A DNA stretch of 63,155 nucleotides, the filler included, from Lenisia limosa (Eukaryota > Protista > Breviatea): the NCBI GenBank assembly GCA_001655205.1. It is 5 parts of 5 records of this genome, joined end to end, with 100 filler letters (N's around TTAATTAATTAA, not from the genome) between each part and the next. Parts side by side here need not be neighbours in the genome. Positions count along the whole stretch, not along the records: positions 1 to 29,684 come from LPNZ01004562.1; 4 more parts are not named here. The stretch is one strand, 5' to 3'. The position numbers and the translations under genes were made by a program. Under the pieces are notes generated by a model that did no database searches, was not told the DNA's origin, and was given only the letters and a program-made list of their open reading frames with translations. This document shows positions 1-51,320 of this stretch, piece by piece (within the stretch, counting starts at the first letter, position 1; every line of letters begins with the position of its first letter).

Positions 1-2329
1 ACCTGCCCTTCAGGCAAGTACCTTACTGGCACATGTGGAGGTACCAGCAACAAATACTGCACAAGTAAGCTTATATTAAGTATTCACTGTAATATTCAGT
101 AAGTTTTACATTACATCCACAACACAACACTGCGGTGCATTGATCGAAGAATGTGTCGTATAAATAACACAGAAGTATAGTTTTAAAATATTATATATAT
201 TAGTAGTATATATGCTTTTTGTTCGTCTGTTTTGTCAATAGTATATCATATGATATAATATGATACTCTACCTTATCACCCCCTCCCAGCATGTACATCG
301 TCCTGTTCTTCTGGCAAGTACCTTGCCGGCACTTGTGGGGGTAGCAGCGACACGTATTGCGCAAGTAGGCATGGACGATTTTGAGTATAGCAATTGTTCA
401 CTATCATTAACAATTCATTAATCAAGTTTACCAGTCTCAACCTTCCTTTACTCTGATAGTATATTACTCATCACCAGTCTCATCCTTCCTTTACTCTGAT
501 GGTATATTACTTATTGGCGCGTGTATTCTTAGCTCTCCCCCTGTTTAATTGTGATCTCAAACTGTTTTCGAACATTCTCACCTCCCCCCCCCCCCNNNNN
601 NNNNNNNNNNNNNNNNNNNNNNNNNNNNNNNNNNNNNNNNNNNNNNNNNNNNNNNNNNNNNNNNNNNNNNNNNNNNNNNNNNNNNNNNNNNNNNNNNNNN
701 NNNNNNNNNNNNNGCAGGTAGGCTTTTTTACGGACTACATGGATTGAAAAGTTTGTGACACCAATATCTTTGTTGTTTTTGTTGTTGAAATAAAAAACAA
801 CTATTATACTCGCCCATTTGCACATGTTCGGCAATGGACTTTTACAATATTTTCTTATCGATTTTATTGAAAGTTTCATCCCAATAACTACAACACTCTT
901 TACTGTTGCAGCGTGTACCACCGTGTCAAATTGCGCTCCTGATATGTACCTCTCTGGCACTTGCAGCACTAACAGCAACCCCACATGCATTAGTGAGTGG
1001 CTGATAAATCAACTATTCCAACATTGGTGCATCAATTTCTATTTTACTGAGACGGAATGGATCCTACTGGATTATACTGTATGTATGCAAGCTGTCATTT
1101 ATTACCTTTAAGGTTGTTCAACATCATGCCCCTCTGGCAAGTACCGCAGTTCATCTTGCACTGACACCAGTGATATAACCTGTTCAAGTTTGTGACTTTG
1201 GTTACTTTTCCCCATCAATAGACTAACGTTCTTCTTTCTTACCTGTGTTGTGGTTTACTCCTCAGCATGTACCTCCTCTGTTACTTGTTCCTCGGGCAAC
1301 TATCTTTCTGGAACTTGTTCGTTCACAAGTAACCCTTATTGCGCTCGTTAGTTGGGCGTAACTGTATTTTCATATTTGAATGCATACCGTGGTAAACACA
1401 GAAGAATCGTACATTGGTGCATTTACTATCTGTAGCCTGCAGGTCAAGTTGTCCTGAGGGAATGTACCTATATGGTGCATGCGGGGACACCAACAACCGA
1501 ATTTGTAGAAGTATGATGGATTTATCCAATTGATTAGATCGAAGTAAACAATGTCATTTTCAACTATCTTAACTCGAGTATCGTATATAATGTGTGTTGG
1601 AATCCATCTCACTACCCAGGCTGTCAGAGTTCATGCTCCACTGGGTACTATCTTGCTGGTAGTTGCGGTGGATTCAGCAACTTTTATTGCGAACGTATGC
1701 ACCAACTTTGCCTTTGCTCTGATAATACAAAACCTTTATTAATTTGCTCATTTGCTCCAAGTAGCAGCACAATGTAGAAATGAGAAATCATAGAAGTATC
1801 CTATCAGAGGCATCTATTCTATCAAGCTAATTAGATTTTCACTCGGTCATTTAGTACAACACCCCGTTTCAAGATCCTGTTAACCCCCCCCCCCCCCNNN
1901 NNNNNNNNNNNNNNNNNNNNNNNNNNNNNNNNNNNNNNNNNNNNNNNNNNNNNNNNNNNNNNNNNNNNNNNNNNNNNNNGTTCTACTAACTCTGATACCA
2001 CGTGCACAAGTGGGGGGGTAGGCTGCATATAAGCGCTTCTGCAAATATTGTGCACATTCATAACTGTACTTACTGTCAATTCATGTTTCAGAATGCTCTG
2101 TTTGTAGACCAGACGAAGTAGTTTTCAAATCATGTACTGATGACAGAGACACTGAGTGTATTCGTAAGTGGGGTATTCCAATGAAGAATACTGGCGTAAA
2201 GGTATTTATCACGAAGCGAATAATCAAGCAATATGGGGGGGGATGAGAAAAATAAGTTGGGCCACTTGGAGAATTTACTTCTGATACACTCTAGCTTGCC
2301 TGAGAAGGGATTGTCTAATGCCATCGTAG
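1..2329 (+). CDS. 5'-partial Cys-rich repeat protein (TNFR-cysteine-rich-region-like modules), at least 10 repeat exons
   Basis: GT-AG exons 1-64, 290-364, (gap)-717, 912-992, 1113-1187, 1266-1346, 1436-1510, 1620-1694, (gap)-2009 and 2092-2163 each encode one module, e.g. CTSSCSSGKYLAGTCGGSSDTYCA and CSVCRPDEVVFKSCTDDRDTEC. Probable last exon 2295-2329 (PCLRRDCLMPS*) is less certain. Confidence 0.8.
430..514. repeat. 43-bp tandem duplication (intronic)
   Basis: accagtctca(a/t)ccttcctttactctgat(a/g)gtatattact, two copies. Confidence 0.9.
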
Positions 2330-2544: not shown

Positions 2545-4362
<1,818 letters not shown>

Positions 4363-4730: not shown

Positions 4731-5572
4731 CTAGGCTTTGAGGGGGGCGGGGAGGGAACCCATGATTGGTTTCTCACCTAAAATATTTGAGTCATATGAA
4801 AGATAGTGGAGATGCCTTGACATATATTAAATTATATCAAAAGCACCTCGTCATACCTCCGCAACAGAGGTACATGCCACCTTCTTCAAGCTCAGAAATA
4901 TCCTTGATAAGAGTCTTCAAGTCCTAACACCAGTCAACCAATTTGCTATATTTGTTTGCATACCTTCTTGTAGATCTTGATGCAAGGTCCGGTTGTAAGC
5001 TTGACACTGTTGGAGGCCTCTTTCTTGAGTTGGTCAAGAGTCTTAATCTTGGCCATCTTTCCAGAAGGAATCTAAAAGAAAGTCAGAAAGAACAACAAAA
5101 ACAAAAGGAACAATCCGGATGAAAAGGGAAAGCACTCTTACCTTGGTTCCCTTGTCAAACTTGTCACCATTTCTGAAGAGGATAATACTGGGAGCAGCAG
5201 TGGTCTGAACACCAAATTTAGCCTTGCCCATTTCGCCCTTCACGGTAGGGGACTTCTTTTTCTCAATAGTAGAGGATGAAACCTAGAAGTTAGGTTATTA
5301 TATCAACAAAAAGGGCTCAAAGGCGGACTATATTGCTGATTCTCGGGTCTGAAATGACTCCAAACTCCAAACCTCATTGTTTCTGGAAGCTGATGAAGTG
5401 GATCCAGTGTTGTTGACAAGACTCTCACGTCCAGCTTTTCCCTTTCCTAAAAAAATAAAAACAATTCCTCGAATTATCTCGAAATACCTCCTCCTTCAGC
5501 ATCAAAACGCTCCTTGTGAGCACCAGTGTACTTAGAAGAGTCGGTAAGGCGAGAAACGACGTCAGAGGGCAT
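4731..5572 (-). CDS. Apicortin (partial p25alpha/TPPP motif + doublecortin DCX domain); apparent 1-nt frameshift at 5436-5447
   Basis: Exon 1 encodes MPSDVVSRLTDSSKYTGAHKERFDAEG and exon 2 GKAGRESL (p25alpha signature). Later exons give IILFRNGDKFDKGTK...TLDQLKKEASNSVKLTTGPCIKIY...LEEGGMYLCCGGEKP (DCX). Stop TAG at 4733-4731. Confidence 0.85.
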
Positions 5573-6497
5573 GTTGTTAAGTTTTATAATATGTCAAAAA
5601 TACGACAAGAGAGAATATGACCTAGAAATAGCAGTTTAACTGTAACAGGCAAAAAAATCAAAAATTATTTATATATTCGATAATTTTTTCGAGCTCGGCG
5701 AAATAAAGGGTACCCTAGTGACACACCCCCCAATTCACTTATCTCTATTCCATTTCCAAAGAACCAGCTGGTTATTGCTCTGAGAGTGTTTGAAGGAAGT
5801 ATTGTGATAAAACTTGTGATACACCCCCNNNNNNNNNNNNNNNNNNNNNNNNNNNNNNNNNNNNNNNNNNNNNNNNNNNNNNNNNNNNNNNNNNNNNNNN
5901 NNNNNNNNNNNNNNNNNNNNNNNNNNNNNNNNNNNNNNNNNNNNNNNNNNNNNNNNNNNNNNNNNNNNNNNNNNNNGTCATGAGCGGGGTGGGCTCTGAC
6001 CCATCCCACTCGCTCCTCCAGGCAAGGTTTGTGGGTGGGTGTGTGTGTGTTGTGTGAGGAGTTCATATCGGTTCCTTTTAGGAATTCAATCCGATCCCGA
6101 GAAGAACTGAATCTCCCGATAATTCATCGATATATGAGAAGACTAGGCTCAGGGGACTGGAATCGATAGTTCACCAAACCTCATAAATACCAATATTTCC
6201 AGAAAGCCGTAATGATAAATATCTACAGTGCAATGACAAATGTAATGATATGCTGATACTTCAGGTATAATGAAATTCAAGAACTGCGAGCAGAGTTACT
6301 AAGTGGGAGTGGTGGTTTTGTTTTTGTTTTTTCTGTAACGCGCTGTTTTTTAAAAAATAAGCCCTGATACGATTGACTCAATCTAAAGCTCAATATCCGT
6401 GTCATGATTTCACAACAGAGTTGATTTTGGGTGGTTTTTTTGTTCCAAACATTTTCCAATTTTACCCCTCTCCCCCATCCCGCTCACCCCCTTCTAG

Positions 6498-6586
6498 GCC
6501 TGCGAAGGAAGCATGAGAACCAATCAATTGTCCTTGAAAACACCCACATTGAGCTTGCCGACGCCCGTCAGAAGGTCAAGCAACTG
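6498..6586 (+). CDS. Isolated exon of an unidentified coiled-coil protein, truncated at a gap
   Basis: Follows the acceptor cccttctag and reads LRRKHENQSIVLENTHIELADARQKVKQL into a 12-N gap. Upstream exons (about 6080-6300) could not be resolved. Confidence 0.35.
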
Positions 6587-6598
6587 NNNNNNNNNNCT

Positions 6599-7372
<774 letters not shown>

Positions 7373-9748: not shown

Positions 9749-10069
9749 ATTTGATTGAGAATATCGAGGGCGTTTGGGACAACGTGAGTTTCTTTCGCTT
9801 TTCTGCTACAGTTTAATAGTTTAATAATATTAAATTAATAATAATAGCGGCAGTTAGGGATGAGAGGGGCTGAGGGACTTGATCAAAAAAAAAAAAAGCC
9901 GAACGAGTAAAAGTCCGGCTACCAATAAGCTGCTTGTTTCCTGGTCTGACCAGTCTGACCAGTCTGACCTTTTTGAACGGTCTTTTGTGTTAAAATCGTA
10001 AAGGGTATTAGTAAACGGTATATAAGTTAAATAGGTGGATAATTTGCACGAAAGCGGTTCTCAATCGCG

Positions 10070-13000
10070 ATGACAATATGTTTTCAGACTAATTTTGGAG
10101 CTCTCGTTACTCTCCTGCTTTGCTTTGTGTACCCTATTGTATGTACATCTCCAATAATGTGAGAGGGATTCGCTGAGTGGACAACTGTGAGAGTATCCTA
10201 ATTGTGGTGCATCTCATACACCGTACCAATATCAACGTGAACATTTTCAGATTAAAATGATAAATGAAAAAAGCAACCCAATGTTTGAGTGATAATAGTT
10301 TCATTGACATAGCAGACATTCATCACATACGAGTTGATATGAGGTGTGCGTGATTTGAAAATACTGTTTGACAATAACTTGATTGCCATACAGATTTACT
10401 GAGTTTGGAGTTCAGCTACAGTTGGCAGAAGCTACTGAAGGGAATCATGCAATTTCCAAGGTTTGGGCAGATGACATATTCTACGTCCCTCACAAACGGG
10501 ACAATCTTTCCTGTTGCTCAATTCCTATTCAAAGCCTCAAGAATCTTCAACTTTACTCTTCAGGATGTCTTCACGACCTTTCTGAACAGTGAGGTGGCCT
10601 CACAGAACTTTGTGGACCCTTGAGATATGGCTAAGGAGCATGGAATATTGGAATTTAGTTGTGTTTCTCAGTTATTGAGGTACAGATGTAAAAACTCTTT
10701 CCCATTCATTGGGTTTGTTGCAATTTCCAATATCTAATATTTTAGAAATGACTTGTTTGGTGGACTCACCCGAAGTTGCTGAAGGTTTGTGTGCTGATGG
10801 GCAGAAATGTATGATATAGGGTATAGATACAATGTAGTATATATCGGTATGGTATACTGTGAATTATTCATCTTCACTTTTTTTTTTGTGTTTTCTATGC
10901 ATTTGTAAAAAGAGGATCATTAATTAATTCCTCCATCACCTGTTTTCACTTCATGCCTCTTTCAATGATCGCCTAGGGGTATTTGTTGAGGTAACATCCC
11001 GAGTGAGGGGCGCATCTTCAGTACTAACTGATATCAACGTCACGGTAAGTGGACTGGTCAAGGGTTTCCTATTTGGAACCTTTGGAAGCCCTAATATGAA
11101 TATGCCTCCAACTCTGTTGATCTTCAGTGTATCCCTAATTCCAAATTTTATTTCTGATTACTCAGGGTAGTTGCCCTGAAGGCACTGTATTGAATGTGCC
11201 CAAGACCAGTGGAGTTGAATGCAGCTTCTCCATGGGCTGGATTGACGGACCAACTTGTGATACAAGTGGGAGTGGTAATTATTAAGTTTGGAGGAAAATT
11301 GTTTAGATGAAAGGAGCTAATGAATCAGCGTATTAAATAACCAAGAAGATACACAAATGAGCACATTAAACTCATTAGAACTTTTTGCATAATATAACAT
11401 AGTGTTTGTATTTGACATTGACAATCTAGTTACCTGTGACAATACATTTGACAGTACTCTTTCGTCAAATTGCACCGCCGGTAAGCCTAAGGATAGTTAT
11501 TCTAGGGCTTTAGTACCAAATACGAAGGGAACTTCTTTTTGGATTTTTTTTTTTGTGCTAAATACTATGCCCATTTCTATTGCGAATGTTTTGGTCTGGA
11601 ATTTACTTACTTGTTTTTTTCTTGATCATCCACACTTTCTTATTTGTCAAGATAGTACACCTTATGGCGGAGCATGTTCCTTAAGCTGTGTTGATGGTGG
11701 TGCGACCGCATCAGGTAGGCCCCGCGGTATTAATCATGACAATATGATTTGTGTCAACCATTGAGAGTCCCCTTGGCTGCTAGAATCGTGGTGTGATAGT
11801 GATTTCTTTTAGTCATAAAATGATATGACGGATACGACCCGAGACTGTTTAGGATATGAAATATAATATGTGTGATGGAAAATTCTGTAGTTGTGTGGTT
11901 CACTTTACATCAGGGACTCCAGTTGCAGTCTGTGGGAGCTCAGGGTGGGAAAGTAGCTTCAACTGTGGTATGTTCTGGTCCAATTACAATGATTATACTT
12001 ACAAGAGTATGATTTTCCTTTTATTGGTGCCACAGTAGTACTGATTGACAATTAGGTACAGTTATGAAGTCTTGTGGAACAGGTGACGTATACGGTCTTG
12101 GACAGGTGAGGCCCGAACTCCCACGATTTTCAAAGAAATCATGTTGTATGTCTAATACAACATATCATATGATATTATAATGTTAATGTGTAATATACTG
12201 TAGTATTATATCATATGTATGTATTGGTCATAGTTGGCGAACTACTGTTTACCATTGTATTTTCATCACCCAGCCAAACACATTGGACAAACTTGATGGA
12301 GACTTTTGGGACTTGGGTTCCACCTGGGGTTCTGACATCAAATTCATCACAACTGGCTTCTTTAGCATCTGTGCTGTTACTCATGGTACGTCTTCACGAT
12401 GTAAATACATGTGATATATTTTTGTATCTTCTTCTATCTCTTTGATTTTGCTCACATCCCAGATTCGACCATCAAATGCATGGGAAACAATGACTACGAA
12501 AACGCTGCGTGTTCTAGCCAAAACCCCGCTACCACACTCCTCCCCTGCACAACTTTAGTTGGGAAGACAGTGACCAAAGTCCAAGCAGGTACCCACTTCT
12601 TCGCGGTTATTGGTAGGATAAAGAACCGCTCAACGCTTACTTCTTTGATACACTCAAAAGTTCGCAGATCTTTTGATCAGAAATAAAAAATGAATATTCT
12701 ATTTTGATCTGTCACCACTGGATTCACCTTCCTGTTTTCACCCAACATATGGCAAGAACAGTCTTTTCCATAAAATTGACGATATTTTTTGTTCACAGTG
12801 TTCAGCCGATGACCAAGTGTACACATGGGGAGAAAGCTATCGTCTCCAGACCCTCCAAGCCACCACCACCAACTTCGACACCCCGACACTCGTGAGCCTC
12901 TTGCTTTCATAGTCTTGATGAGCGTGTTTCACATTTGGGGAGGCACGAAGCTGATCGTATGGGGTTGTATGACAAATGTGTGAATTTTTATCACCCTCTT

Positions 13001-14921
13001 ATCTATATGAGCATACGTGTGCCACCAACCATTTCTACTCATGTTCTCATGGTTCATATCAGTTACTACAAGTGATTAAATACATTTACATAGCTTCATG
13101 TTCCTCAGAGTTAGCTAACATCGCCAGGTTGACCTGGGAGGATCGTTCACAGCATTGGACGTTTTTACGGGTCCTCATACAACCGTTATCCGGAGATGTG
13201 AGTTGATGGTGTCAACAGAATGCGAATTATTGGTGTTTTGCTTCAGCTTTCCACTTTAAATAGTGTATTGCTTTTGTACTCACCCCAACCCTTCAGCTGA
13301 CAACAAATACTACGGTGGTGGGTATGGCCCATACGGATGCTTTAAGGGACTGAATACGCAAAACACAGCAGCGCATATTACCGATATGACCGGCTCGGTA
13401 AGAACACCATTGCTTAACTGATGGGATTTTTAACGATTTCACTATCTTCTTGATGATCATCACCTCATTGTAGACTGGAACAATTGTTAAGTATGTGACA
13501 GACCACCATGGAGGAATCCTTCTTAACAGTAAGCAATAATTCAGTCACACAGCCATTTTTGTCCATTATCTGCCTCACCGCAAAGATGCCGGAGAGATGT
13601 TCAGCCACGGAAGCGGCTCGTATTATAAGCAGTTCTGTATGACCAATCCGAATAGCAATGTGAACGACAATTGGGCGCCTGTATGTTGGAATATCGGTTT
13701 AGTGAAAACAGTTGTTGTACTATATGTGTGGTCTGTTATTTTCATGACCCGTATATCCTGGCGCATTGTGATGCAGTGCGAACTATTATTTTTTTTTTGA
13801 AATTTGAAGTAATTTTTATCTTACCCTAGTCTAATAATGCTGGGGGAATGCAAGGTACCATCACAGATGTGGAGTGTACGTACAAGAACTGCGTTATGAC
13901 TACAAGTAGGGGACCTTCTTGCATTACTGTGAAACCTGATCGTGAATTTTGATAACAATCTATTATGATTTAATTCACTACTTTATCTTAGCCCTGATTA
14001 TTTGTTTAGCTGACAACCGAGTCTTCGTTTGTGTTGCTGTCAGTTTGACTGCCGGAGGTGTGGCCAAATCTTCTTCCGCAGATCCTGTAAGGGGGTTGTT
14101 AATTGGAGCGACCTTGAACGCATGCCGTTTATGCGGTTCTCTTCTAATCTCAACTCCCCTCCTGTGTAAGGCAAAGAAATGGTGAAGTGTTGTATTACAC
14201 TTGTTGGTATGATATATAGTTATTGCTTGGGCGTTCCCTACGTGCCCAACAAGAGTTTCACGGACTTTTCGGACTGTGGGGAAGTCCTAGTGATTGCCTT
14301 AACAGCTTCGGTCAAACCCTTGTATTTCTGCCTGTTACACCACAGTACGAAATCACCAGTGCCGTTAACAGTGGATGTTCGGCTGGGACGTATCGGAACA
14401 AAATCGAATCGTCATATTACAGCATGGCTTTCCATGGATGTTGGCGGGGGATGATTGAACTCCAAAAATGATGACCATATCGAGTTACGAAATCTGACCT
14501 CTCAGCCTGCCCCAAGGTCTACGGCTTCCAGACCGAAGGAGCCAAACCCCTTTGTAGCTCCACTGGGTCTCTAAACACGGTATGGTTGTGGGCCCTATGA
14601 CGGAGTGGCTATTCACTTGGGGTTTCACTTCAGTCTGAACAATATTGATTCAAGCCGAGATTGGAATGGTTAAGGAAGCAGTTTAAAACTATTTTTTTAT
14701 TGAATGGAAGAGCTTAACCTCCCCTCAGATCCAACCGGTTGACACCTTCCCTGGAGTATACAAATCAGTGTCCATCCAGGAAACCATGGTGTATACCCTT
14801 GAGTGATGTCTCTAATTTTCATCTCTCTGTATTATGTTATTATTTATTATTTGCCCATTTTTTTGGAGTTATGTGGGAGTATATTTCTGGTAGATTTGGA
14901 AAACAAAGCTCACAAAAATAA
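10070..14921 (+). CDS. Secreted Sushi/CCP-like + RCC1/BLIP-II-repeat protein, paralog A (3' end approximate)
   Basis: Signal-peptide-like MTICFQTNFGALVTLLLCFVYPI. Cys exons VTCDNTFDSTLSSNCTA / DSTPYGGACSLSC / VAVCGSSGWESSFNC. RCC1-like exons IKFITTGFFSICAV-DSTIKCMGNNDY, VTKVQAGTHFFAVI and DDQVYTWGE. Confidence 0.7.
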
Positions 14922-15382
14922 ATAGGTTTAGTGGGATTTATACCCTTTCATCAATGAGTCTTTTTGCTGTCTGGCTGTCATCCGAGGCTGTCATCTTGAA
15001 CTCATGTTGTGTTGACATTCTAATTTCCCAAGTTTCTCCAAAGAGTAGCGGAGGATCTATTACCCCGGTTGCGTTCCGGGAAATTCTAATTCTAAATTCA
15101 ACCTTTTGATTTGCACTGGATTTGTGGATTTGCATGAAGAGAATAGAGGAATAGAGAAGACAAGGTTGAGACGAGGAGAAAAGGGGAAATTGCAATCAGA
15201 CAGACAGACAGTTTACAGCCAGAGAACCAATGTTGTATAAAAATTTATTTTTCATCCATCCACGACTCTCTGCAAAAATTGAATCATAAATTCATAAACA
15301 GATAAACATATCATAACAGCAAAAAATTCATTGAGTGAAAAAGGAATACGGAAAAAGGATAAAGGAAGGGCACTCCAACAAT

Positions 15383-17894
15383 ATGCTCCTCGCCTTGATG
15401 AGGCCTTTTCTTATCTTCATTCTGGCTTTCCAGGTGACTGCTTTCTTGTAGGATCGGATTGTTCATGGCTTTTTTTTATTTTGGGCGTTTTAACTTGATA
15501 CCTTGCTTGAGTGATGAGTGTAATACTCATTCCTTCGGTTCAACCAATCAAGCTATTCGCTTACCCTTCAGGAAAGTTGCATCAGATGGTGACACTATTG
15601 AGTAGGCTTGGTTTGAATTTGAACACATCAGTTCTAAGGGTAAGAATAATTTCTGTTCATTTCTGGATTAGTGCTGTCCCCAGTCAGTTCCTTGTTTCAC
15701 GAGAGACTTTACTGCAGAATCCTCCCCTCCCCTCCCCTCCTCCATCCGAATTCCCCTCACATTCCTCAGGGCCTCTATCATCAACGCCAATGAGGCCACT
15801 GTGTCCACTTTGAAGGTCGAAACCGTTCAGTTCATCTCCCCTGACAAAACGGTAGGCTTGCTTCATGTGAAGCCAACAAGATTCGTGAGAACAAAGGTCA
15901 TTTCGGCTGAGTGCTTCTTTGAATTCAACTCTCATAGTCCTTTCTTTCATATTTGCAGAACTTCAACCAGGACGATTGGGACTACCTCTCAAACCTCGGT
16001 AAGCTCAGGTGGCTGTAAGAGAATGAATCTATACATATCGCATATACACGACAGCACCTCATATTGCAGCCAAATTGAACCGCAAGTTCCTCAGCTGCTC
16101 TGAAGTTCGGGCTGCGGGGCTCCCTTCAGGGTTCTATACGATTAATGGGGTGGGCAAGGTTCTATGGTGGGGAATTGAATTATTTCAAGATAACAGTTCC
16201 CAAATTTCTGACATTGGGGATATGTTCATAATGAAACATAATAAATTGGTTTGATACTGTTTTCTTTCTTCATATGTAATCTGGTGAGAAAAAGCGTGAA
16301 CGTGTTGAAGTGTGCTTGGGCCAAACAACAAATCTTGAATAGTTTCTGTATTTTTGATTCATTTCTATTGTCTATTGCCTTTGACCTTCCAGATTCAAGA
16401 GGAGTGCTACATCACTGAAACGAAGAGTTTCAAGAAGTGGGAGTTATCAAAGTGATTTCTGCTATTGATTGAATATCTAAATGAAACTGGAGATGTGTTT
16501 CTGTTTTTACTCCTATTTTTTGTTTTCTTCACTGTTTCAGGGTCATACACAGTAACGCTGGCAAACACTACGTTCCAAATGAGCAAACCATCCCCTTCCA
16601 TTTCTGGACGCAGAACTTCACCTCGGGCAGCCCTAGTGATGGTGGGAGGGGGGTCAGTTTGACCCGAAAAAAACTGCGTTAAGTGAACATTCCTTAATTC
16701 GGTATTTCAACATTTTTTGGGGGATTTTTTTTTTTTACCTTATAATGGATAGTGGGTTTGTGTGTGTCTGGGTAGGGGGTATTGTTTTCTTAATTGTACT
16801 CGAGAAAAATGACAAAAGATAATCGCCTTTTAGATTCTGCATTCTTTGTCTCCGAGGCCTTTTACACCGACATCCCTGTTAACCCTATTCTTATCACTAG
16901 TATGGGGAACTTAAGCAGTAGTATATGATGGGCTGGTTCTTTGTATTATAGAGTCACACTGCTATTAAACTATGAATAAACAGTCATAATTGAAACTCAA
17001 ATTGAGTTTTTTCTTGGCGACTCATTTCTGACTTGTCAATCCTAAACAATCCCCTTATTTGACCGTCTAGCTGCCAATGGGATTGTGGATGTGAAGACCA
17101 TGCTTCTTAATGATTTTACTGTCAGTGCTGGCGACCAGTTGAAGGATTTTACCAGTCGCATTACTGGAGTAGGCCACGCTCAAATTATTCTGCTATACTT
17201 TTGACTCCACGCTTTCTTGACATCATTAATAATTTGCTCTAATCGCCCAGACGTATGACAGCAATCTTCCCACCGAATCGAAGAACATCAACTTCAACGA
17301 CATGCATTTCGTTACATCCTAGTGAGCCTGGCCCCTTCTAATCTCGGAAGAGTTTGGCTTTGGATCTTTCGCTGTTCTCAGAACAAAATTTCTACTTCCA
17401 CCTCACGTTTTAGTTACGAACGTGCTGCTGCACATACGCACCATATCGTTTATATGTCGTTCCACCAAAGCAGTTCCGCTGCCTCTCACAATGACTTCCT
17501 CTGCATCGACCCTCATTATAACAAATATGAGGGAGCTTGTTCCTCCTATATTGGTGAGCGCACACTACTAACATTTGTTTTGAATCAATACAAAACAACA
17601 TATTATGCTTATATGATATGATGATATGACATATCATCATAAATTTTTGATACATCAGAGTCAACGTATTTAACTCTGTCCAGCCAACGAGGGTGCTTTA
17701 CCTGGTGTTTGCGCCGTGCGTGAGCGTAACGAAGCTGGCAGTAACCACCCCACTCAGTGCAGCAGCTCGGTGGGTGGATCCTTCTGCTCATTTTGTCTTT
17801 TACACTACGCTTTATTTTGTATTATTTTCATAGTCCGCATTCACTTTTTCAGACCATGAACGATGTCCTAGTTGAAATGTTTTATGAAAACTAA
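15383..17894 (+). CDS. Secreted protein with a fibrinogen-C-terminal-like (FReD/intelectin-like) segment
   Basis: Signal-peptide-like MLLALMRPFLIFILAFQ. Exon LSCSEVRAAGLPSGFYTING followed by EECYITETKSFKKWVI resembles the FReD start (SCxxI..G..SG.Y.I...YCdm...W). Final exon TMNDVLVEMFYEN*. Confidence 0.5.
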
Positions 17895-18355: not shown

Positions 18356-21300
18356 TTATCTTACCTCTCCTTCCTGAGGCGCTCGGGAGCTGAATTTGCC
18401 TTCAGGACTCACCTCAAAAATCTGTGGAAATTAGAAAATGCTCCACATCACTTTCAATAAATTTTTACGTGTTGGTAAACAAACCTGTCCAGTTTTCATG
18501 TAGAGAGCCTGTTTTGAGTCACGTGTGATACCTCCGGACTCCAAGGATTGAAGATACACCCGATTGGCCTCATTGACCTACGGGTGAAATAAGTTGGAAT
18601 GAAACTGAATGCGAGGGCAAAGTAAGGGATGACGGCATTAACTCAAAATTTCCAAAAATTCAAAACAGCATCACTACGGCGCATCGACTTGGGATTCCTA
18701 TGAAAACGTTGGAATTCCCATATTTTACATGGGAATCCCATGGAATTTTATGAATGTGGGGAGTAGGATAACCCCAAAGAACGACAAGCCCCCACCCACC
18801 TCCGTGAGATTTCTTATGGCTAAAAGAGCCCATTCTTTCAACACTAAATCGGTAAGGTTCAAGGAGGGTAAGATAATGGATGCAAACTGCTTTGGTGACA
18901 AATAAATAAATGACGCCTACATGGGGCATCCTCGTGGATGGAGGTGAAGGCCAGAAGTAGCGGCAATCCCTCCAGTTCTCTCACCTGAGCGATCACGAGT
19001 TTTGAAAGAGTCCAAAATACCGATTGAAAAGTTATGTATAGTCAGGGTATGGAGATGGTTAACAATTGTCCTCGCGGTTCTACAAAGTGGAGGAATATGC
19101 CGAAGATACAGAAAACAAGGAGTTATCCAAGGGAACTCAGATTAAAATAGGATATTCCATTGTTTCTCGTGAACTTGCCAACCCTGTCTTGCGCTTCAAC
19201 GTTTCTAAAGCACAAGTTCGCAATGCATCGAATACATGACGTTTTCAGGAGAAGGGCCAGGGATTCACTAGGAAGAAGGGACTCCATAGAAGGCTCTTGA
19301 ATGTTAAAAATGCTGCCAAGTCTGAATAACTCCATGTAATGAGCAAAAGTTCCCCAGACTTGAGGTTGTTTCGATTTCGTCGGAGACTTCTTCAATGACT
19401 GGTTCAACTTTTCCACCTACATATGTCACTCATTTTAAAAAATTGAAACAAGTACTGAAAGTGATATGTCAAAAAAGAGAATATGTGCGCCATTAACTAT
19501 TGTATTTGGTGAAACGACATGCAGCTGGTATGCAACATGCAGAAAGCAGATGACAAGGAATTGAAAGGCTAATCCAGAAAGTGGCAAAAAGTTCCATCAT
19601 ACCAGCCTTATATGTTTGCGGTGGGTATGAGGTGTACAGTTCTCGAAGTAATCGAACCAGGGTTCGGATAACATCCGAAGAGGTCATTTGCCGAAGAGCT
19701 GACGGTTGGTCCATTCTGGAACAAACTTATTATCACTTTGGTTGATTATAAAGAGGATCGGTAGACCAGCAAAAAATGTATTGGGTTTTTGCTGAATTAG
19801 AACCTTAGAAGCCCTGATTTCCATTCCTCAAACCGAGCAGCAGCTTCACTAACAAGATGGAGGACAGTGGCCGCCTGTTGGAACCTTGTCACAACAATCT
19901 ATTTAGTTACTAGCAACAGGATGAAAGGCAACTTCATTTGTCAACCTTATGCAAATATTCCATCTTTTACATTTTTAAAATAATACACATACATTTTAAA
20001 GAGTCCAAGAGCCAAAATACCTCTGGCGATGACAAATCAATTCTTTGGAGGTTGCTGCTGTCCTTTTCTTCTTTTTCAGCCTGAAAAAAGGGTCAAACTC
20101 AGCACACAACAAATGAATAATAAGAGAAGTGAACGAACAGTATGTAGCTTCTATGGGATCTATTTCAGCTAAAAACAATTATCAGAAAACATCAATTTAT
20201 TGATACAATCCGTCTTTTGTGCCTCTGAAGTGGATCACTTCTTGCTTTACTTGAAGAAACACTGGTTTTCTCACCTTTTTCTTCGCTTCATGTTCGAGAG
20301 CATCATAGGGGTTGTCGAATTCTGGCTCCTCTTCCTCTTTGGGGTAGGTCTGGGCAGCCAAGTCTACACACGTTAGCAAGGAGTAATGTATGATACAACG
20401 CATTATATGATCAAAGCCACCCCCTTATAATCATATTCAAAGCCACCCGCTTATACTCATATTCATTATATTGGTGTCTTTTTGAGAAAATCCTTTTTTT
20501 TTTAATTCACGAGTACATTTACTCCAGTATCCACCATCCCCCCACTTTCGCCTTTGAGAGCAGCATCGATATGCGCACGAACAACCTGGAGGGTTTCGGA
20601 GGCCCACTCCACCATCGGTACCAATGAAAGTCGAACAATGTCGCATACGGCAGCGAGGGGAATTGTCATTTCTGACCAGCGTGAGGACAATAAAATAGGT
20701 AAAAGAGAAAGTAATAAGTATTCTCATTCTGTAGTATAAACCTGGACGACACCTCTCAAAATTTGATATTTCGAAGAGAACTCTCTTTCCATGTACCAGA
20801 TTGGGTTGCAAGGGCCTCGGAAGAAGGCGTGCAGCAGAAGTCAAGAAGAGGGGGATTTTTGGTCAGGCATTCTTCAGCAAATGTCAATAGAAGGTGCTGA
20901 GTTGTAATCATTGAAGACAAATAATATTAGCTACAAAATGACTTCGTGCAATTTTGATACAATAACATGCCTCAAATGGGCTATTGTTACAATATGCTGC
21001 ACTTATAATTATTCAAATAACTGCAAGGAACCGAAAATATGTTTGTCAACATACTGATTCGTTAAAGGATGGTGAAAGATTAAAAGATTAAACCTAAAAC
21101 TACCTGATGATGAGTGAGCTTCTGTCTCTTTCTGGTTTGCAAATGTCCTCCATCCACGGCCTTCCAGAGGGCCTCGAAATCACTTGCGTAAACAAGGTGT
21201 GCCAAGAGTAGCGTGCAGTGTTCAACAGCTCTCACAACTGACACAGGCTTTTCCTCTGGGGGGAGGGTGAAAAGGATATGATATAGTATACTATATAGTA

Positions 21301-47602: not shown

Positions 47603-50600
47603 ATGAGACTACTTAGTTGGTGGCTGCTTGCCACCCTCTTCGCCATTACATTGGCAACTCCGAGGTAAATTGGGCGTGTGGTGTGGTGAATGGTGAATGG
47701 TGAATGGTGAATGGTGAATGGTGAATGGTGAATGGAGGGTTGTGGTCAAATGATTAGGATTAGGGTTAACAGATTGTTCTGATTCTGATGTCTATATTTA
47801 GCCCACGCGTTTCACACTTCAGCATGACCTCAAGGGGCTATGTTCAACTTGAGCTTGATGAGCCAACCCAGGCCAACCATGCAGCCACCTTTGGAAGTCG
47901 GTAACATCCGCCTCACCTTACTAACCCTGCAGTGGTGCGATGCATGATTGGTCCTGAAGTCCCGGACGGCCTGATACTTTCCCTTAGTAACGTCAAACGC
48001 ATCGCCGGCGGCAGTCAGGCCGACTTCACCATCGAGGTGGCTGGGATTATTGTCTTGTGGGTCACCTTGAAACCAGGTGGTACTAGTAGCACTTGGGTCC
48101 GATCCAGGACCAATTACACTTCATTTTCTAGCAATATTCAAGTGCACCACACCAAACAAAAACAAATAATTTGAGCAACAAATTGGAATCTAGTCAAAAA
48201 CTGGAGCAAATTACNNNNNNNNNNNNNNNNNNNNNNNNNNNNNNNNNNNNNNNNNNNNNNNNNNNNNNNNNNNNNNNNNNNNNNNNNNNNNNNNNNNNNN
48301 NNNNNNNNNNNNNNNNNNNNNNNNNNNNNNNNNNNNNNNNNNNNNNNNNNNNNNNNNNNNNNNNNNNNNNNNNNNNNNNNNNNNNNNNNNNNNNNNNNNN
48401 NNNNNNNNNNNNNNNNNNNACTGCGGTTTCTTGTTCTTTTGAGTCTGGATGGGCCGAAGTACCACTGTGTCTCCCTGGTACTTGGTGAAGGAATTTAAAC
48501 TTATAAAGCTGTTTGCAGTGGTGCAATACCAATGATGGGTGGTTCTGTTTTACATTTCTTAATGGATGAGACGGATAAAAGTGTTCACATTATTTAGTGC
48601 AATGCCCTGTTGAACTTGGCGCGATTGACGCCACAAATTGCACAGAAAGTGGGCCGGATTGATAATCAGCTTGATGAACACTAAATAGACAACCAATATT
48701 TAATACCCAATGGAGCAGGCTACTTTTTTGTAATATTGATTTAAAACTTGTAACCAGCCCCCAGGTTTTTACGACTATGGTACAGTGTGTTCAGCGACAT
48801 GCACTTCGGATAGCTCAACACACCACTTCGTACGGGGCTCTCCTCCAATATTAAGTTTCCATTTGCCTTCACTGAATTTTTAAAAGAGCTGTTTTTTTTT
48901 TGTTATTTTACCGATCATTATTTGGTGTGGCAGCTTCTACAAATAACATTTTCGAACCGAAATGTTATTGTTCTCAACTTAACTAACTTTTAACACATTT
49001 CAGACCTGCTTGGAGACAAAGAGATTTGACAGCTCATGTACAAAAGGTCAGTGTAAAATAATCATGGTTGCTCAGAATGTACCCAACTCACCTCACCAGA
49101 GTATATTCCGCTGACCTGTGGTGATAATGGTGACTCTCAAATCGGAAATGTTGGAATGTAGTAGCATGTGTGTTTTTAGATATGATTTTAACCTATTAAA
49201 TAATAGCAATTATGAGTATATATGATCCCATTTAACGTTGTTTCCTTCCCGTCCGTTCCCTGATAGCATAGAAACAAACAGCAGCAGTGTACCATCCCAA
49301 TTCATACCAGCCCATTGAAGCTGACGGATGGTTTGTTGAGGCTTACGCCTGCATTGTTACTTTCTAGGTTTGATGATGTTGTTTTTGCCGTTCAGCTAAT
49401 TCGAACGATGTGTCTTGTCGACTCAAGTAGGGGAAATTGTCTTTATATAAAAACCTTTCGACCTCTTTTCTTAGAGCGTGGGGTCAACCATTTTTCTCAT
49501 CTTCTTAAGGTTATAAGATATATTGTGTGGGGCAAAACGCATATAACGAGGTGAGTGGACGTTAGCCCTTCTTTTTCATTGTGTAGATTGATACAACTAC
49601 CAATGATCCCATTGGAACGCCAACACTTTCAATGGACTTTGGAGCTATCGGTGAAGTTGTTTCTCACTTTGTCTCGGGAGCATACCATCATACCGTCGTC
49701 TTGAGTGGGTGTTGGTTTGCCTCTTCATCTCTAAGCTTTGTATTTTATTTCCATATTATTGGGAAGTACCTGGAGAAAAGTAATTTCATATTAAAGTACA
49801 AGGTTCACACAATCTAATCAATACTAGAGTCTGGAAAGGCCTATACATGGGGCTTTAACCATTTTGACCAGCTTCTGAGGGACTATTCGCTAAACAGTGA
49901 AGGAACACCCACGCAAGTGAGCGGATTGCTTTCGTTGAACACATGAGATCCCTTTGACGTTTCAGGTTAGTCTTCCTGCCGGAAGATTGGCTGTTAACAG
50001 CTATACGGCCTACTACGTTTCTGTATTTGAACTTGGTAGGCCGAATATTTCGTAGCATGGGTCTTTTGCACCCAGGAAATCATCCTTCTTGTTCGAGTAA
50101 CGTAGTAGATGACGGCACCTTCTATGGAGGAGGGTATAACGGTAATGGCGGTCTTGGGGCTGCAATAGACTCCATGCCTGCCCAAATCATTGACACAACT
50201 ATTCCTGATACGGTATGTGGCCTAAACAGCATCGGGTGTTGTCGTCAGTTTACCTTTGACTGCATAGTCAAGTCTTGTGAAGCAGTATTCGTTTGGAGAT
50301 AAGTCTCTTATCTTGACCGGTGAGTTTTGAGAACAGTTTTAGTTAGACAAGCTACCCCCCTCCCCGCATTTATTCTTGTAGAAAATGGAAATGTCTTTGC
50401 ACGAAGCACCACAGCAAGTTTGGGGCGAGTGCCTCTTTTTGCTTTGTTATGTATCTGAAAGTTTGAGCTTAAGATTTAGGCTGGGCGCAACAGGCTTGTC
50501 TTGGGTCCACCTCCAACACCTTTGTTCAGGTTGGTGGTCTATTCATCTTTGTCTCCCGTGCATTTTTCTCTTTTTACTATGATGTTGGATTTTTCCAGTT

Positions 50601-51320
50601 TGAAAGAAACTCTTTATCCTTTTCAGACGAACCCCTCTCTTCAGGGGAATGTAGACACTTTTACCTGCAACACTGATAATATGTGTGTCTTTCTCTTGTG
50701 TATGTGGAGGGAGTACTGCTGTTGTTTACCAGATTGGAAGTCAGTTCTACTTACCTCTTCAGTTAGTGGAGACATTATGATGTGTGCAAACGGAGACTAT
50801 ATTCCTGGTCATACTGGAGCAAGTGGTGTTCCGGTAGGTTTCTTCCAGTAATGATGAGATCAATATGTGTTCAGCAACTCAACATGTTAGATTAATATCT
50901 CCTCTGCGGTTAACGCGAACTGCGACGCCGGAAAGAAGATCACAAAGATCAAGGGTGGCATCCATGGTGTCATGTACTTCTTTGGAGGTTGGGCCGGACT
51001 TCTTTGCGGTCACTGCCAATTCAACAATGTCATCTTCCAGAATGTTCTGCAACTAAGGTGTTTGGCATATCGAGTGGCTTGGCACCCCCCATGTGTCGCG
51101 GTTCATCTGCTGCAAAAACGGTTGGAGGGCACGGAAGAAAGACTCTAAAGATGATCTTGTAACGACGTAGGTGTACGAGGTGATGACCACAACGAAACCT
51201 GTGGAAGACGTGCTGGGAAGCTATTCACAAACATTGGTGTTGACTTCCAAGTAGATTTATTTGCTATTATTAATTCTCTGTATTACATTCAATAGAAAAG
51301 AAAAAAAAAGATAAATGAAA
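47603..51320 (+). CDS. Secreted Sushi/CCP-like + RCC1/BLIP-II-repeat protein, paralog B (3' end approximate)
   Basis: Signal-peptide-like MRLLSWWLLATLFAITLATP. Cys exons VQCPVELGAIDATNCTE / GFYDYGTVCSATC. RCC1-like exons VSHFVSGAYHHTVVL-ESGKAYTWGFNHFDQL and DDGTFYGGGYNGNGGLG. Confidence 0.7.
47687..47735. repeat. (TGAATGG)7 microsatellite in first intron of RCC1 paralog B
   Basis: Seven perfect 7-bp units. Confidence 0.95.

Follow-up and report, generated by a model that had tools for sequence, protein, structure and literature searches.

A multi-copy gene family of the breviate Lenisia limosa predicted to encode secreted proteins with Sushi-like modules and an RCC1-type propeller

Introduction

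What kind of protein results when a protist gene places cysteine-rich, Sushi-like exons directly ahead of RCC1-type repeats, and what might such a protein do outside the cell? The question is raised by a locus of the breviate Lenisia limosa that lies in a stretch of 63,155 nucleotides (assembly GCA_001655205.1; here called the window), made up of five parts of five records joined end to end with 100 filler letters between each part and the next; the locus falls in the first part, positions 1 to 29,684, which comes from LPNZ01004562.1. A gene of 22 exons (E1 to E22) can be modelled at 10070-14806 on the plus strand, to which all exon coordinates below refer. Its product very probably consists of a signal peptide, about 30 amino acids of unknown nature, two Sushi/CCP-like modules, and a seven-bladed propeller that runs to the C-terminus. 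The account favoured here, which is probable though far from assured as a whole, is that the gene belongs to a family of secreted binding proteins in which the Sushi-like modules and the propeller are combined.

Breviates branch beside animals, fungi, and apusomonads; their way of life depends on bacteria, which they both eat and host. L. limosa, a marine anaerobic breviate, is known for a mutualism based on hydrogen in which Arcobacter lives on it as an epibiont, and in culture breviates are given bacteria as food (PMC12453579).

Structure of the Gene

The gene model is based on a reading of the plus strand from 9900 to 15300, in which open segments were compared with paralogous loci of the same assembly. 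The piece has a G+C content of about 41% and no long open frames near the gene, and therefore reads as intron-rich eukaryotic DNA. In the model all introns are GT-AG and range from 57 to 259 nt, the mean exon is about 76 nt, phases fit throughout, and neither an in-frame stop nor a stop in a split codon occurs; the predicted product is about 560 amino acids long. Two elements read from the sequence are candidate signals: a TATA-like box (tatataag, 10020..10027, +) about 45 nt 5' of the start codon, and an AATAAA (14917..14922, +), likely a polyadenylation signal, about 110 nt past the stop.

An initial annotation of the locus gave the gene as 10070-14921 and named a second paralog at 47603-51320, outside the piece analysed here. 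The start stands, whereas coding ends at the TGA at 14804-14806; position 14921 lies inside the AATAAA, which accounts for the earlier end coordinate. The stop comes about 25 amino acids into E22 in the paralogs on contigs C5902, C10250, C5760, and C9286 and in both of the transcripts described below. A further terminal exon 3' of E22 was considered and dropped, since the paralogs stop within E22. The parts that had been listed are all present, on the plus strand and in the order given, both in the 22-exon model and in the collinear paralogs; three further Cys-bearing exons (E4, E6, and E9) and a 25-nt micro-exon (E3) had not been listed. What had been termed a C-terminal Cys exon is E21: the exon exists, as does its donor (GTATGG at 14580), but it is the first half of blade 7 of the propeller and not a separate module.

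Three joins that are ambiguous from the window alone (those at E3, E4/E5, and E8/E9) were settled because paralogs have counterpart or fused exons. E3 (10564..10588), which encodes DVFTTFLN, was placed because an exact 25-nt counterpart with GT-AG borders, encoding GAFMELMQ, is found in C8345 and because the phases need it. The E8-E9 join and the E9 acceptor at 11914 follow from the fact that E8 and E9 form a single exon in C11623 and that this is the only phase-compatible acceptor. The micro-exon, which in paralog locus L038 lies at about 2111-2135, could easily be missed by gene finders, and its omission would shift the frame of the whole model.

The Sushi-like Modules

Module 1 has the form C-x33-C-x15-C-x4-GW-x5-C and is spread over three exons. 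E4 (10746..10784; MTCLVDSPEVAE) begins the module and carries the first Cys, within a motif, MTCL[VL]D, that is kept in paralogs; E5 (10977..11044; VFVEVTSRVRGASSVLTDINVT) forms the middle and is conserved in C5760, C9286, C10113, and C8345; E6 (11166..11274; GSCPEG..VEC..GW..GPTC) supplies the C-terminal two thirds and is the best-conserved exon of the family, its Cys2, Cys3, Gly, Trp, and Cys4 being invariant in 17 paralogs. Module 2, C..C..C-x3-C-x13-C-x3-GW-x6-C, has one extra Cys pair. It starts with E7 (11430..11480; VTCDNTFDSTLSSNCTA), a phase 1-1 exon with the pattern VTCDN..NCTA, continues through E8 (11652..11714; DSTPYGGACSLSCVDGGATAS, which carries DSTPYGGACSLSC), and ends with E9 (11914..11967; TPVAVCGSSGWESSFNC); all three are supported by paralogs.

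Domain and profile searches were run exon by exon, so that the Sushi scores are those of exon pieces and not of the joined protein. When a profile of E6 was compared with the Protein Data Bank (PDB), six of the 12 matches, including the four best, were CCP modules of factor H or FHR1, in the register Cys2-Cys3-Trp-Cys4 of the factor H modules; the best E was 0.014, and none of the 12 reached 0.001. A whole-genome search with Pfam Sushi (PF00084; cut-off 20.7 bits) gave 21.5 bits for the E6-equivalent exon of C8652, 20.6 bits for that of C2476 (21.1 with its in-frame neighbours), and 17.6 bits for that of C4710; the E9-equivalent exon of C4856 scored weakly, at 15.4 bits. An hhalign comparison of E6 with Sushi exons that belong to unrelated L. 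limosa genes aligned the two in register (P = 2e-4, probability 46%). The modules can on these grounds be called Sushi-like with moderate confidence. A Pfam scan of the window and the paralogs, made on open frames and on clean exons, also gave one stray cEGF match.

Several Pfam-level Sushi matches also occur on contigs C9396, C10648, C8715, and C9984, outside the propeller family as far as checked, some of them in very long open frames (778 and 1841 amino acids); CCP modules are therefore used more widely in L. limosa.

The Predicted RCC1-type Propeller

From E10 onward, exon and phase periodicity and repeat alignments indicate a unit of about 53 amino acids that occurs seven times, the last unit being E21 plus E22. 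An intron at an equivalent position divides almost every blade in two. First-half exons (G-x-V-Y-x-W-G..P) begin in phase 1 and end in phase 0, second-half exons (V..I..G..H..A[VIL]) do the opposite, and blade 2 is a single exon. Given the exons without guidance, MAFFT stacked E15, E17, E19, and E21.

Blade 1 is formed by E10 (12056..12105; TVMKSCGTGDVYGLGQ), which rests on phase, GT-AG borders, and weak paralog matches, and E11 (12274..12385), which is conserved in at least seven paralogs. E12 (12463..12612; STIKCMGNNDYEN..VQAGTHFFAVI) contains the whole of blade 2 and matches C5760 with E 1.8e-11. Blade 3 is divided between E13 (12806..12891; DDQVYTWGESYRLQTL..TPTL) and E14 (13128..13197; VDLGGSFTALDVFTGPHTTVIRR), the latter placed by phase and by matches in C9286 and C4856; blade 4 between E15 (13297..13397; DNKYYGGGYGPYG..), conserved in C9286, C10250, C10113, and C7393, and E16 (13474..13528; TGTIVKYVTDHHGGILLN), conserved in C9286, C11623, and C5902; and blade 5 between E17 (13586..13680; AGEMFSHGSGSYYKQFC..), conserved in C10250, C9286, and C5760, and E18 (13830..13905; ..MQGTITDVECTYKNCVMTT). 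In blade 6, the first half is E19 (14010..14086; DNRVFVCVAVSLTAGGVAKSSSADP), which fits by phase and is present in the spliced transcripts P0121 and P0124, and the second half is E20 (14346..14439; EITSAVNSGCSAGTYRNKI..AFHG), which holds a signature specific to the family. Blade 7 consists of E21 (14506..14579; CPKVYGFQTEGAKPLCSSTGSLNT), supported by paralogs as well as by the MAFFT stacking, and E22 (14729..14806; ..ETMVYTLE), which includes the stop and is supported by paralogs and both transcripts.

The RCC1 identity of the blades is solid at the level of sequence. Pfam RCC1 (PF00415; cut-off 21.7 bits) recognizes the E13-type exons of C9286 (24.4 bits), C3955 (26.4), C7080 (26.1), and C10526 (27.6); E13 of the window itself scores 13.7 bits (E 0.094). 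A profile of eight E13-type exons, the window's included, was searched against the PDB and matched the third RCC1-like domain (RLD) of HERC2 with E 2.3e-13, with all seven blades aligned and three stretches that each pass the E cut-off; further matches were HERC2 RLD2 (1.6e-7), HERC1 (9.6e-6), BLIP-II (0.005), and RCC1 (0.01), followed by RPGR and UVR8. Blades 4-7 are too diverged for Pfam or phmmer: Pfam found nothing in P0121 or P0124, and a phmmer search of the PDB with P0121 gave chance matches only. The E20 profile had no match in the PDB. The nearest ESM Atlas clusters of the blade 4-7 part are nevertheless RCC1_2/RCC1, and a partial AlphaFold model of P0121, made from a thin alignment and with a pLDDT of 50, has RCC1-like domains as nearly all of its top Foldseek matches and no match that points to another fold.

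Cysteines recur within the blades. The two in E18 align in seven matched paralog exons, and the Cys of the 'C-P-x-V-Y' motif and the second Cys of E21 are found in every matched paralog exon; their placement fits a disulfide-stabilised extracellular propeller.

Signal Peptide and Secretion

E1 (10070..10158; MTICFQTNFGALVTLLLCFVYPIVCTSPI) contains the start codon and a signal-peptide-like segment, ends in phase 2, and is the sole strongly hydrophobic exon by a hydropathy heuristic, with a Kyte-Doolittle (KD) value of 2.55 over a 15-residue window. E19 reaches 2.21, but its run of hydrophobic residues, VFVCVAV, falls short of the length of a membrane helix; the other exons stay at or below 1.55. 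By hydropathy, no membrane-spanning segment is found in the exons of the model after E1. The protein ends at its last blade without a membrane anchor, the C-terminus being a blade strand and not a glycosylphosphatidylinositol-type tail. First exons with a Leu-rich core, an [ST]P[IVA] end, and a phase-2 GT donor precede E2 in C6113, C8345, C11623, and C7080, and the candidates in C9286 and C5760 are hydrophobic and less clear. The earlier claim of a signal-peptide exon shared by family members is supported, and the prediction of a secreted, soluble protein is well founded on sequence. E2 (10394..10460; FTEFGVQLQLAEATEGNHAISK), whose phase fits E1 and which has counterparts in paralogs (for example, TEEGIQLKLREATESYHAV), encodes the N-terminal region of unknown nature.

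Eukaryotic RCC1-like domains are mostly intracellular, and the signal-peptide and Sushi-like exons might accordingly have been mis-joined to the gene for an intracellular RCC1-like guanine nucleotide exchange factor or scaffold, in which case the protein would not be secreted. The HERC RLDs are the best sequence matches, and no transcript found spans E1-E14, both as a mis-join would predict. The intron between the last Sushi-like and first propeller exons (E9-E10), however, is just 88 nt long and in phase, with both exon types sharing one frame; the order E1 to E22 recurs in 13 loci, signal-peptide exons of the same phase recur in paralogs, and the conserved blade cysteine pairs fit an oxidising compartment. 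A mis-join is very improbable in the light of these features, and a single secreted product remains the preferred reading.

A Gene Family of Lenisia limosa

Scans of the assembly (49.0 Mb in 11,727 contigs) returned 41 matches to E6, about 25 of them with E < 1e-3, and 16 to E20. Many contigs have both, and several of these also have Pfam RCC1 matches. All 22 exons were used to search 13 paralog loci; exon order and orientation are kept in each of the 13, and in three more contigs likewise, which is far more than chance would give. The multi-copy family that had been proposed is upheld by this genome-wide count of paralogs; on sequence criteria it would comprise some 25-40 diverged copies, and L. 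limosa is so far the one organism in which it has been found. Identity between copies is typically 30-70% per exon. Conserved neighbouring genes were looked for at the family loci and none was found.

C8345 and C6113 form a recent pair with 88-96% DNA identity, introns included. Over their N-terminal and Sushi-like exons, which differ by nine synonymous and four non-synonymous changes, the ratio of non-synonymous to synonymous substitution rates (dN/dS) is 0.14, which indicates purifying selection on this part of the protein.

Two Trinity-derived L. limosa proteins in EukProt (EP01086) correspond to the paralogs C9509 and C11623, with identical exon bodies. The joins are as modelled: E18-E19-E20 in C11623 and E20-E21-E22 in C9509, with the E18-E19 join confirmed in P0124 and the E20-E21-E22 joins in P0121. 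At least two family members are thus transcribed and spliced as predicted; the transcripts found span E15-E22 and E18-E22 only.

These data bear on whether the copies could be decaying pseudogenes, or repeats spread by mobile elements, that have no current function. Copies are many and dispersed, some of the own-genome matches contain stops, and a short interspersed repeat lies near several members, all of which would suit such an origin. The window copy, on the other hand, is open over 22 exons, two paralogs are transcribed and correctly spliced, the recent pair has the low dN/dS given above, and the Cys, Gly, and Trp scaffold residues are kept across copies; that the family is defunct is extremely improbable.

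Introns have been gained or lost among paralogs: C8345 and C6113 have E4 and E5 fused, C11623 has E8 and E9 fused, and in C10526 an intron splits E12. The sites of intron variation in the paralog loci are L038 2408-2518, L037 2025-2135, and L044 1677-2110. Intron length also varies, the E5-E6 intron being 49 nt in C8345 versus 121 nt in the window. Contig C6985 has two E6-type exons within 9 kb (6607-6708, minus, and 15139-15246, plus) and an RCC1 match at 17884; some family members therefore adjoin each other. A stretch of about 100 bp at about 18640-18750 of the window, also present on C7393 and C7080 near family members, matches in several frames and on both strands, and is probably a noncoding short interspersed repeat.

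Relatives and Similar Systems

A profile of E20 (31 columns, from the family alignment) was searched against 1.84 billion representative proteins at E <= 0.001. There were five matches, one of them a false positive due to a low-complexity repeat; the four real ones are all from L. limosa, two being unspliced open reading frames of paralog contigs and two the EukProt proteins. Two JGI metagenome scans revealed no relative, and a word search with P0121 returned only P0121 itself and one open-reading-frame fragment. The claim of a lineage-specific family agrees with the profile search and the metagenome scans. No paper was found in the literature that ties breviates to RCC1 or Sushi proteins, and the joint Sushi-like and RCC1-propeller combination has not been described so far.

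The propeller shares most with the RLDs of intracellular proteins (HERC2/HERC1, RCC1, RPGR, UVR8, and WBSCR16), which have seven repeats of about 50-55 amino acids with the signature G-x-V-Y-x-W-G..G-Q-L..P, and which rank first both in the sequence searches and in the fold comparison of the partial model. RLD proteins, however, are intracellular, lack a signal peptide, and are not cysteine-stabilised, whereas in the Lenisia proteins a signal peptide and two CCP-like modules precede the propeller, which has conserved Cys residues.

The initial annotation started from the premise that eukaryotic RCC1 repeats are normally intracellular and that secreted RCC1-fold proteins are typified by bacterial BLIP-II. 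The premise is incomplete, because the ectodomain of plant CRINKLY4 is eukaryotic, extracellular, and BLIP-II-like; by sequence, the blades are closer to the HERC2/HERC1 RLDs than to BLIP-II (E 2.3e-13 for HERC2 RLD3 versus 0.005). The CRINKLY4 (ACR4/CR4) ectodomain is an extracellular propeller of seven blades, closest in structure to BLIP-II and UVR8; its blades have invariant disulfides, and a cysteine-rich module lies beside it (10.1101/2020.08.10.245050). The conserved blade cysteines of the Lenisia proteins and their neighbouring CCP-like modules are comparable. CRINKLY4 differs in being a membrane receptor with a TNFR-like cysteine-rich domain (CRD), a transmembrane helix, and a kinase, while the Lenisia proteins have N-terminal CCP-like modules and end at the last blade, without a membrane segment, CRD, or kinase; no CRINKLY4 chain is among the PDB matches of the E13 profile at E <= 1.

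BLIP-II of Streptomyces exfoliatus is a secreted, soluble, seven-bladed RCC1-like propeller that acts by binding alone, and it suggests a special case of the binder account, in which the Lenisia proteins would be inhibitors whose propeller face plugs the active site of hydrolases of prey or epibionts. The match of the E13 profile to BLIP-II, the signal peptide and anchor-free soluble propeller, and the dense contact of the organism with bacteria would all fit. The blades are nevertheless much nearer to the HERC2/HERC1 RLDs; BLIP-II is bacterial, has shorter blades, and lacks CCP modules; its target is class A beta-lactamase, and no such target enzyme is indicated for the Lenisia proteins; and the family is larger than one inhibitor function needs. 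Inhibitors of this kind are quite unlikely, and the broader reading as extracellular binders is retained.

For the Sushi-like part, the CCP modules of factor H and FHR1 have the same four-Cys and Trp framework with matching spacing. Scores to them are weak, module 2 of the Lenisia proteins has an extra Cys pair, and only two modules are present, joined to a propeller; factor H and FHR1 belong to complement, whereas L. limosa is a protist without a complement system.

Proposed Function

RCC1-like propellers are binding platforms and not enzymes, as in RCC1, BLIP-II, RPGR, and UVR8, and CCP modules serve as binding and spacer modules. The blade-2 exon E12 retrieves one paralog versus about 25 for E6 (E < 1e-3), which hints that the propeller diverges faster than the Sushi-like part, although the comparison is of whole exons, not site by site, and is confounded by exon length. 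The known roles of the two parts, the missing anchor, and this difference in retrieval are the reasons for proposing a set of exported binders in which the CCP end is constant and the propeller end varies. The protein would be exported, and its disulfide-stabilised propeller would bind without acting as an enzyme, in the general manner of RCC1-like domains; the Sushi-like pair, which is better conserved, may act as a constant stalk or adaptor, and the many diverged paralogs could have different binding specificities. Secretion, binding, and targets are here inferred. An extracellular binder of some kind is reasonably likely. The most plausible targets would be surface molecules or secreted enzymes of prey bacteria or of Arcobacter epibionts, because L. 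limosa lives among such bacteria; a bacterial target is possible, if doubtful.

Several points besides the confounding effect of exon length weigh against this account. Exons of the window's own gene fall below the Pfam cut-offs for RCC1 and Sushi and have no Pfam Sushi match at E <= 10, and the Sushi assignment depends on scores that are weak but consistent. For the fold there is one partial, low-confidence model (pLDDT 50). The transcripts found include none from the window's own gene and none that covers the 5' half of a copy, and no signal-peptide exon is joined to the propeller in any of them. The apparent absence of relatives rests on a single 31-column profile and on collections with few breviates.

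Many adhesion and matrix proteins contain CCP modules, and components of an extracellular matrix, adhesion system, or cell coat would likewise be secreted, cysteine-rich, and present in many copies; the proteins might then function in substrate attachment or filopodial gliding and not in recognition of other organisms. They have, however, no anchor, no repetitive or low-complexity region of the matrix type, and no known adhesion domain, and the strong divergence among copies is atypical of structural coat proteins. A structural role is unlikely on this evidence, and exported binders are again preferred.

A bolder form of the binder account is a secreted recognition repertoire, in which the CCP stalk, constant across members, would attach to the cell or a partner protein and the fast-evolving propellers would bind differing bacterial surface structures. 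This is a tentative idea and on balance improbable. If it were true, L. limosa could sort prey from its hydrogen-consuming Arcobacter epibionts, and the family would stand as a protist counterpart to pattern-recognition systems, resting on a propeller that in eukaryotes is otherwise mostly intracellular. The bacterial side of the Lenisia-Arcobacter association has already been studied; the family would add concrete candidates for host molecules that hold or select the epibionts.

More generally, a large, organism-restricted, and probably exported family appears to join CCP-type modules, familiar from animal complement and adhesion, to a propeller of the type found in intracellular regulators, which would amount to an extracellular CCP and propeller toolkit assembled independently in a protist. 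The genes are also a clean example of a propeller gene with blades split in two exons and with introns gained and lost between paralogs. Should the binding role be wrong, the family would still be a lineage-specific expansion, ordinary except for its unusual combination of domains.

Other Features of the Window and Genome

COX1 has no match anywhere in the 49-Mb assembly; this fits an anaerobe with genome-less mitochondrion-related organelles, although the assembly may simply not include the organelle contigs. At 794-1774 (+) of the window, the pattern C-x3-C-x2-G-x-Y-L-x-G-x-C recurs in open frames (for example, ACRSSCPEGMYL and GCQSSCSTGYYLAGSC) that have no Pfam match; from its sequence, the region looks like another cysteine-rich extracellular gene. 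On the minus strand, a gene for a GdhA-type NADP glutamate dehydrogenase is present as a tandem pair, at 2548-4113 and about 5000-7173; one copy has an intron-free stretch of 326 amino acids. Their best relatives, about 63-66% identical, are mostly from marine bacteria and also include Carpediemonas and one EukProt transcript; the pair may be an old bacterial acquisition that was duplicated later.

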